Below are positions 19,001 to 22,000 of a stretch of 64,000 nucleotides of DNA, in pieces. Each line of letters opens with the position of its first letter. The stretch's first letter is position 1. The notes beneath the pieces were generated by a model. It did not search any database and was not told the DNA's origin. It saw nothing but the letters and a program-made list of their open reading frames with translations. The translations under genes and the position numbers were made by a program. This DNA comes from Glycera tridactyla (Eukaryota): positions 33,480,001 through 33,544,000 of the forward strand of contig OZ286465.1 of NCBI GenBank assembly GCA_965644265.1, read 5' to 3'.

Positions 19001-22000
19001 TTCTTATCACTATAACCACAGCAGCTGAATCATGCAGCAGTGGCTCTCTGTGTCTTGGATATGAGATGCCTTTCACAGACCGTGTCCTTATGACTATAAC
19101 CACAGCAGCTGAATCATGCAGCAGTGGCTCTGTGTCTTAGATATGAGATGCCTTTCACAGACCGTTATCTTATGACTACATCCATAGCAGATTGATCATG
19201 CAGCAGTGGCTCCCTGTGTCCTAGATATAAGATCAATAGCTTCAACCAAGCAGAGTAAGTGGGAAAGTGTTCACTGGTGCTTATCAGAGATTTCTATAAC
19301 ATAGAGAACATATCGATTCTCTCTCAAAATGTAACCAGAAACAAACTTCTCACATGATTACTGAGAATAACACTAATTCACCCTTGCCTCAACTATCGAG
19401 ATTTGCATCATGAAGTCTTGTCATGTGCCTTCACCGTACTCGGTAGATCTGTTATGTACAATCAAAATTTTGAATGAGGCGTATCCAATATGTGGGAATG
19501 AGAAGTCTCTTTTCTTTGATCTATGGGCCAACTATATGTCATTTCTTAAATCAAACAGTGAACTATGAATATATGCAACGATGGAGCAAATATTTCGACA
19601 TTGCTGGATCAACATTGCTTGAATTCCATTACAAAAGAATCATCAAAATAAGGTGCACATGGAAACAAAATTGAGAGAAAAGTAGAGAAACTGGCAGTGA
19701 TTGACCTCTTTATCCCATAAACCAACGCAGAAATGATGAATAAAGTGTCCCTCATCTTTATCCCATGAATCAACACAGAAATGATGGAATGAATAATAAA
19801 ATGACCCTCAATTTGTTAAAGGACCTGATAAGGAAGAAAGATAACACATCTACAGGAATGAAGACTCAAGAGAAGAGACTACCACCATGGTGTATCACCT
19901 GTTTACCAGAGGAACTTCACTGTACTGAAAACATCTAATCTAATAAAACCTTATATGATATGAAAGACAATATATATGATGATAAAAATATATTCCATAT
20001 CCACCACTAGGTCCCTCAAAAGAAAATGCTGGTATTAGAAACACAGAATTACACATACAGCAGCTCAAGCCATTGAAGAATCCCAGTGCCAGTTCATGAA
20101 TGAGAGAAATAACATTTGGAATACAGCATCCTTATCTGTCAACAATTGATCCAAAGTGAAACCCCCTACAAATGGATTTTCCATAATAGGAGACTGATTC
20201 CTTTCTTCCTTCAGCTGATCGAGATATTAGATCAGATTTATGTGCCTCATAAGCTCATGCAAAAACTGATTCCGTGCATGTACTTATTCTGCAGTCACCG
20301 TTTTTCAATCTTTCATACTTTAAGCCATAAGGCAAGATCAGTGTATTTGCAGTGATAACTGCCAGATGGATTTAAAACACATGTGATAATAGAAATATGG
20401 AATTAATTGTTGACCAGGTGATATAAATGTCGTCGAAGGTAATCAAATGAATGTCAGATCTTCATCAGATACTGATTCCTCCAATGAAACGCCTTCATCC
20501 ATGACGTCAAATCGACTTAGGATCAGCTCATTGTTTTTATCTCAAATGTGATCAGTACAATGATATCTGCCTTCTTACAGCTGGCAGCACAGTACCAAAA
20601 AAGCTAGAGCAATACTATGTTATTCTTAGCAATCACAATCTGGAGAAATGTGATGAATGAAGACATGGGCAATTTACTTTTCAGACACATACATCAGGAA
20701 TGACTGGATGTCTGATTCTGTCATACTTATACATGATGATGATCTATCTTTTACTACTGGCACAAGGTATTCAATGGCACTGGTGGCTAAAACAATTGCC
20801 AAAGCTGAAAGACATATTCCCGTGAAGAAAGGAACAACTCTAACAAAAACACATCATGACAGCTAAGGGCAGTCATGATGTGAGAAGAAAACGTCAATAA
20901 AAATATGAGCCGGACAGAAATGTGCATATCGGAAGATTTCTACAGAGACAAAACACAAAGCTGTGATGCCAAAACAGGGCAAAAATGGAGGTGTGAAACA
21001 GAAGGTAAAATGTGTGAAATGCAGTTACTTGTGAGAAATGGTAAAGAAGAATTCTGCACCCAGGAAGGGGTGGGGCTTTCACACTCTACAAACCTTCAGT
21101 ATACATCTTCAATGAAGTGCGAACCAGAGCAAAGAGTGTGGCGTTGAACATCACCGTACCGTCGCTGTTAAGCGGCATGTTCATTGATACCAAGCGCTGC
21201 AAAGAGTAACCAGTCGATACATTTAAGTATACCATACCTTCATTATAAATCCGCAAAGAGGTGCGAACAAGCGCAAACAGAGTGGCGTTGAACATCACTG
21301 TGCCGTCACTGTTGAGCGGCATGTTCATAGAGACCAAACGCTGCAACATATACGCATGAACAATGTGAAGATGGGTACCAGAAAAATCTCTCATTGGCTA
21401 TCACCCCATTTCGAATCCTTGATGCTTCATATCTGAAGCAAGCTCCATAACCCAAGAAAAGAATTTTTCTAAAGAAACTGTGTAGATTCATAATGACTGC
21501 ATTCTCATGATGAACCCCTCATGGCAGGATACCCAGCAATCTAGGTATTCATAGTCATAGTCGATTCAAACATGTACATGTGCACACACGCATACCCACA
21601 CCAATGCTATATTGTGTCATTAAGAGCTGTACTTTCTGTACCATGAATGCTTTATGAGGATGAGAGGTGTCAAGTGCATTGTGTACAACCAAGTGATATG
21701 GATATACAGGAACGCAAAGTATCACATATCTCGCAATAAATGTTGGTGGAGGTTTGGACATTAATGAATATTTCTTCAGAAGTCTTCCATAGCAGATGTT
21801 GAAAAGGGCACCATTTTCATTTAGCAAGTTCTCCTTTGTTTCAATTTCCCATTATAATCCAGAATATCTTCATATATGTGCTGATCACTTTATTCCTGCC
21901 TGTATGAATGAACTTCCTTCATTGTCAACAAACTGAAGTGGCCCAGAGTCATTTTTCCCACTTCAATTTGAGGCTAGAAAACCCCAAAAGAACCTCCCGA

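Follow-up and report, generated by a model that had tools for sequence, protein, structure and literature searches.

A tandem pair of candidate mutually exclusive exons at the EF-hand/pre-IQ junction of a Cav1 calcium-channel gene in Glycera tridactyla

Results

The window analysed here, a stretch of 64,000 nucleotides from Glycera tridactyla (contig OZ286465.1, positions 33,480,001 to 33,544,000), contains two adjacent homologous exons of a Cav1 gene, named A and B in the following, which have equal length and phase and carry AG/GT splice sites at both copies. We consider it probable that A and B are an old, selected pair of alternative Cav1 exons that are used one at a time. An mRNA would then join the EF-hand exon to the pre-IQ exon through either A or B. 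The coordinates of all features are given in Table 1.

Table 1. Exons and spacers of the Cav1 gene described in the text (positions in the window; splice junctions are marked by a slash)
Feature	Position	Strand	Length	Remarks
Upstream constitutive exon	22452..22548	(-)	97 nt	second EF-hand part; donor CAAG/GTTGGC
Exon copy A	21238..21340	(-)	103 nt (3n+1)	acceptor ..ATGTTGCAG/, donor GAAG/GTATGG
Spacer	21197..21237	(-)	41 nt	GTATGG...CTCTTTGCAG; donor of A to acceptor of B
Exon copy B	21094..21196	(-)	103 nt (3n+1)	acceptor ..ACTCTTTGCAG/, donor GAAG/GTTTGT
Downstream exon	16023..16121	(-)		pre-IQ helix; begins by completing the Gly codon
IQ exon	6896..7030	(-)		read directly
Second tandem pair (IVS1-S2 loop and S2)	58551-58441 and 58387-58277	(-)	111 nt each (3n)	AG/GT; spacer 53 nt
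Two IVS3-type exons	53316-53194 and 52317-52192	(-)		about 1 kb apart, like vertebrate 31/32; tblastn matches only

Identity of the gene and position of the pair

Judged by the homology of its predicted protein, the gene is that of a Cav1 (L-type) calcium-channel alpha1 subunit. Comparison of the exon peptide with the PDB gave E-values of 1.8e-13 to 3e-11 for Cav1.2, Cav1.3 and Cav1.1 and of about 1e-3 for Cav2.1-2.3, and tblastn with Cav1 fragments revealed a series of 16 collinear exon matches on the minus strand, running from position 63593 to 6896 and from IIIS6 to the IQ exon. The E-values favour Cav1 over Cav2, and both results support the identity given in the first-pass annotation. Its placement of the pair between EF-hand and IQ was also borne out: according to the exon order from tblastn and a reading of the flanking exons, A and B sit between the 97-nt EF-hand exon and the pre-IQ and IQ exons. 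No other continuous stretch of voltage-gated calcium channels is described as being as conserved as that between domain IV and the IQ motif (PMC3634016). Simulated splicing of the upstream exon, one copy and the downstream exon resulted in an open frame with a canonical Cav1 match for A as well as for B.

Anatomy of the two copies

On re-reading, all figures of the first-pass annotation for the two 103-nt exons, their own AG/GT sites and their distance of 41 nt proved right, and the flanking junctions at 22452 and 16121 were correct. Each copy is preceded by a pyrimidine-rich tract ending in TTGCAG, is followed by GT and encodes 34 residues plus the first base of a Gly codon. A and B differ in 17 of 103 bases (83% identity). 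Direct comparison confirmed that 13 of these differences are silent third-position changes within codons 1-29, a part that is free of amino acid replacements, and that the remaining four cause the replacements R30K, I31M and N33T; after 29 common residues the peptides end with RIYNE (A) and KMYTE (B). The likeness of the copies ends at the splice sites, and the flanking introns fail to align. With a length of 114 nt, the A/B repeat is the sole direct repeat in the neighbourhood.

Beyond the donor of the downstream exon, a second GT follows 3 bases further on (16019), which keeps the frame and could be a small alternative donor, resulting in PPAG-DDD or PPAGR-DDD (window 16023-16014, minus strand).

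Age of the duplication and selection on both copies

Estimates according to Nei-Gojobori (NG86) gave a dS of 1.09 over 34 codons and of 1.31 over the first 29, with corresponding dN values of 0.046 and 0. The third positions of A and B are identical in 16 of 29 codons, and either copy reaches up to 18/29 when compared with the same exon of unrelated animals. Since the third-position identity between A and B is not above that with unrelated animals, the silent sites are saturated, and with a dS of about 1.1-1.3 the duplication has to be regarded as old. In a neutral simulation, in which 13 random substitutions were placed on the first 87 nt in 200,000 trials, a fully silent outcome occurred in none of the trials and the mean was 8.7 amino acid changes; chance is thus no realistic explanation of the pattern seen between A and B.

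This comparison shows both copies to be intact and held by purifying selection since an old duplication, as had been proposed in the first reading of the region. The silent-only pattern together with the saturation implies that both copies were translated and selected for nearly the whole time since the duplication, and selection maintained on both for so long would rule out a recent relic as well as an assembly artefact. Single-copy relatives mostly display R[IV]YTE or [RKH]IKTE at the variable end. Relative to RIYTE, copy A has gained N and copy B has gained K and M; thus both copies are derived.

Constraints on the joint use of A and B

In simulated splicing, inclusion of both copies between the upstream and downstream exons shifted the frame, as had been predicted, and led to a stop (TAA) after 9 codons; skipping of both copies likewise resulted in an early stop, after 28 codons. 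Any mRNA with A and B leaking through would be removed by this frameshift with nonsense-mediated decay.

The spacer is expected to restrict joint use at the level of splicing. Measured from the donor of A, its branch-like adenosines are at a distance of 23-30 nt, which leaves 10-17 nt to the acceptor of B, and no branch point within it could be more than about 31 nt away from this donor. A survey of human mutually exclusive exons (MXEs) took a distance between donor and branch point below 50 bp as potential steric interference and found it in 57 clusters, corresponding to 9% of human MXE clusters (PMC5740500); the distance in the Glycera gene is below such a limit of about 50 nt. For C. elegans, the mutually exclusive pair bet-2 3a/3b is tabulated with 37 nt between the exons (PMC4165533). 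The 41-nt spacer appears to leave no room for a normally placed branch point, and the closeness of any branch point in it to the donor of A would disfavour splicing from A to B. The pair had been described from the outset as sterically enforced; the 41-nt spacer and the distance below 50 nt speak for this, and a steric exclusion of A-to-B splicing can reasonably be inferred from them.

A and B recur with a period of 144 nt, which is divisible by 3, and no stop occurs between them, which leaves A, spacer and B as an open block of 247 nt. We regard this open frame as chance. An ORF of 102 codons (21086-21394, minus strand) spans both copies and the spacer, and owing to the repeat period of 144 nt and the stop-free spacer, gene finders could misannotate a 48-residue insertion at this site.

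With regard to the choice between the copies, local RNA structure was unsupported as an exon selector (z +1.44). The acceptor of B contains a UCUU-type tract (ACTCTTTGCAG) that is absent from A. Speculatively, and by analogy, such a tract would fit regulation by a PTB-like factor; for PTB-like regulation of Cav1.2 exons 8/8a, the reference list of PMC4165533 contains Tang et al. 2011.

Position of the variable residues

In an alignment with PDB sequences, the corresponding exon of Cav1.2 ends with ..TALRIKTE and the next one starts with GNLEQ... The residues that vary between A and B are thus located on and just before the equivalent of the IKTEG motif, which reads IYNEG with A and MYTEG with B. 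The IKTEG motif (1572-76) has been reviewed as important for Ca2+-dependent inactivation (CDI) of human Cav1.2, as has the pre-IQ-A region, and a TLF mutation in the same region abolishes CDI (PMC10094977). Positions sensitive for CDI have been placed between LGF and TLF (PMC4035741). The TLF triplet is part of the invariant stretch of both copies. An AlphaFold model of the EF-hand-to-IQ region of a RIYNE-bearing homologue had low confidence (mean pLDDT 49.5) and was used for secondary structure only; it gives a hint that the variable residues may lie in the break that separates the ATLFAL.RT helix from the pre-IQ helix.

Apart from the exchanges R/K, I/M and N/T, which would fall where the last helix of the EF-hand module ends, just ahead of the pre-IQ helix, the two isoforms would have the same sequence. 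A quantitative difference between them in calmodulin-dependent inactivation or facilitation is probable, and the choice between them would probably depend on tissue or stage. The first-pass annotation had suggested a tuning of residues close to the calmodulin-binding pre-IQ helix; the location of the changed residues on the IKTEG motif strengthens this functional guess, and the effect on gating is a prediction. We consider such an effect of the three replacements plausible, with the counterpoint that all three are conservative and that R/K also varies between vertebrate paralogues.

Search for the doublet in other genomes

Homologous sequences were searched in a representative library with exon B, with the 102-aa read-through ORF, with a 40-aa exon-B query and by a scan of JGI/NCBI metagenomes. 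The 102-aa and 40-aa queries were run against a collection of 5.8 billion clusters, the scan of metagenome contigs gave 80 loci, and targeted contigs were fetched besides. The same 103-nt doublet was not found in any other genome searched, be it in the library, the clusters, the metagenome contigs or the fetched contigs. About 85 homologous loci were single-copy at the exon, including 75 other loci of the metagenome scan and L001, L002 and L009-L011, and complete intervals from the upstream to the downstream exon with one copy were present in RIYTE/RVYTE loci (L017, L018, L031). Insect-type and vertebrate-type loci in the survey also displayed a single copy. No KMYTE-type exon was among the matches obtained in three large protein searches and in the metagenome scan.

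None of the compared loci showed likeness to the introns of the window, and the sampled loci are thus not demonstrably close relatives. The search for the doublet, proposed in the first reading for related genomes, returned single copies of this exon only, from loci that share no intron sequence with the window, and the absence of the doublet in them does not date the duplication. A duplication of this age should occur in relatives; either their clade is unsampled or the doublet was missed. An exact look-up of the 102-aa ORF in searchable protein collections gave nothing, and large protein collections queried with a spliced spider fragment (P0085) yielded mainly arthropod and vertebrate fragments and none from the species of the window.

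Two sets of candidates were rejected. Long matches in L034, L035, L037 and L045, considered as doublets, were single copies by eye. An intron similarity between the window and RVYTE-type loci, suspected from read-through peptides, was refuted by alignment, which placed the donor of these loci 9 nt further on. In the RVYTE-type loci L009, L019, L031 and L079 the exon is 9 nt longer (..RVYTEGNLG/GT) and the next exon starts later, the intron position having slid. Marine plankton metagenome contigs (L003-L006, L022; P0151, P0290, P0291, P0295) contain an intronless Cav1 sequence from IVS3 through IQ, with RIYNE or RIYTE.

A second doublet of the same segment

A tandem doublet of a fused pre-IQ exon was detected in an unrelated invertebrate lineage with introns of about 50 nt (loci L007 (9988-10450), L008 and L012-L016; ORFs P0156-P0167 and P0170). 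The fused exon comprises about 208 nt (3n+1) and corresponds to the 103-nt exon plus the next exon. Its copies are 255-276 nt apart from start to start, are separated by spacers of 47-68 nt and each have splice sites of their own. While one copy hardly varies, the other has diverged, and about half of the residues differ between the two. The doublet is kept in at least 6-8 distinct sequences from freshwater and marine metagenomes.

This arrangement resembles the pair in the window in its location in the Cav1 region, the tandem order, the short spacer, the 3n+1 length and the presence of splice sites at both copies; it differs in its unit (about 208 instead of 103 nt) and in the far greater divergence of its copies. 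It clearly arose by a separate duplication of this regulatory segment. Such an independent doublet makes functional alternative pre-IQ exons more likely, and suggests that the pair in the window is not a one-off.

Other tandem exons in the gene

Further upstream in the gene, tblastn and reading of the sequence revealed two IVS3-type exons and a second tandem pair, which encodes the IVS1-S2 loop and S2 (Table 1). With its 53-nt spacer, the IVS1-S2 pair follows the same short-spacer design as the pre-IQ pair. As it lacks a frameshift safeguard, only the short spacer could ensure exclusion. At 58255, close to this pair, a run of N begins, and a long (CA)n/(TG)n microsatellite (about 57830-57900) is located in the intron beside the masked N stretch.

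Discussion

The interpretation of A and B as alternative exons has to be weighed against four other readings. One copy might be constitutive and the other a silent relic that is spliced no longer or to a negligible extent. In favour of this, the doublet was unseen in the other genomes searched, and the donor of B (GTTTGT) has no purine at +3. A T at +3 is, however, also present in the donor of the constitutive upstream exon (GTTGGC), so that in this gene the donor of B does not stand out. Moreover, AG/GT and frame are kept in both copies, and 13 hits with saturated silent sites would be expected to cause about 8.7 amino acid changes, whereas none is found in 29 codons; we regard a relic as unlikely. 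It also appears improbable that the copies are exclusive with a neutral protein difference, and that what matters is regulation, by splice-site choice in different tissues or by down-regulation through unproductive mRNA. The substitutions are only three and conservative, both R and K occur at the first of these positions in vertebrate Cav1.2 and Cav1.3, and double inclusion and double skipping both lead to premature stops, all of which would suit a purely regulatory role. On the other hand, the replacements are confined to four codons beside 29 invariant ones, both copies are derived in comparison with the single-copy R[IV]YTE, the site corresponds to a motif reported to be important for CDI, and the second lineage retains an alternative pre-IQ exon that is far more divergent.

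The remaining two readings dispense with alternative splicing. A, spacer and B could form one exon of 247 nt with an in-frame repeat insertion of 48 residues, as allowed by the period of 144 nt, the stop-free spacer and the ORF 21086..21394 across both copies. An in-frame period has a one-in-three chance, however, and a random stretch of 14 codons is open in about half of all cases. The spacer moreover resembles an intron, with GT at its start and a pyrimidine tract plus AG at its end; it is implausible that a helix would be repeated where the channel is most conserved (PMC3634016), and such an insertion is absent from the hundreds of homologues fetched. We therefore consider a single exon very unlikely. 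For an assembly artefact, with haplotypes or paralogues misplaced in tandem, one could invoke the masked or gap stretch elsewhere in the window (319 N). Against this stand the 114-nt repeat with ends exactly at the splice sites, unrelated flanks and 16% divergence confined to silent sites; a haplotype collapse would also have duplicated intron sequence, and the gene has another pair built in the same way at a distance of 37 kb. There is hardly any chance that the doublet arose in this way. The most probable reading is still that of an old pair of exons of which one is used per mRNA.

Exons 2/3 of alpha-tropomyosin are mutually exclusive exons of the steric-hindrance type. The pair described here resembles such exons, among them the human clusters with less than 50 bp and bet-2 3a/3b, in that the short distance between donor and acceptor would keep U1 and U2 from assembling on the intron. 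It differs from them by its length of 3n+1, which adds a second, frame-based safeguard; removal of the spacer as an intron is predicted to be disfavoured here.

Events of this kind are well known in voltage-gated calcium channels, and the position of the pair is new. Ten independent tandem exon duplications, each affecting a different exon, have been described in human and Drosophila Cav genes, with three each in CACNA1C and CACNA1D, one each in the Cav2 genes and two in Ca-alpha1D (PMC9741552). For the two events in Ca-alpha1D, the supplement of this study refers to a 'different region' from the human L-type channels and does not name the exons (PMC9741552). The CACNA1C/CACNA1D pairs 8/8a, 21/22 and 31/32 are adjacent duplicates of equal length in the same family, with one copy per mRNA, as proposed for A and B; they encode the transmembrane segments IS6, IIIS2 and IVS3, whereas A and B, with their 41-nt spacer, belong to the cytoplasmic EF-hand/pre-IQ junction. 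In the calmodulin-regulatory region, 37a/37b of CACNA1A/B/E is the one Cav pair known so far, with one event per Cav2 gene, and thus in Cav2 and not in Cav1 (PMC9741552). Like A and B, 37a/37b is an exclusive pair in the proximal C-terminus that modulates regulation. It affects the preceding 97-nt EF-hand exon, the counterpart of which is single-copy here (22548-22452).

The variation of exons 40-42 of human alpha1C reported by Soldatov is not known to be a tandem homologous pair and reportedly replaces a much longer stretch. These exons and the determinants IKTEG/LLDQV, in the passages of the review that cite them, concern the same protein segment as A and B, and for the region of exons 40-42 the same passages refer to Soldatov et al. 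1997, 1998, with no account of the splice event itself (PMC10094977). C. elegans egl-19 is absent from the catalogue of mutually exclusive exons in PMC4165533, and our literature search found no published description of a pre-IQ pair.

The stretch from domain IV to IQ is the machinery for calmodulin feedback. The list of exon duplications in Cav1, so far made up of transmembrane segments throughout, would be extended by a cytoplasmic regulatory site. Taken together with the doublet of the fused exon, we tentatively put forward, as a possibility that is less than even, that mutually exclusive splicing has repeatedly come to act on the EF-hand/pre-IQ junction in invertebrates, with at least two independent duplications, and that it lets one Cav1 gene make isoforms differing in calmodulin-dependent inactivation, a job that vertebrates split between Cav1 paralogues. 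With a difference of three residues inside the IKTEG determinant, the pair would offer a ready-made minimal experiment on the hinge that sets Ca2+-dependent inactivation.
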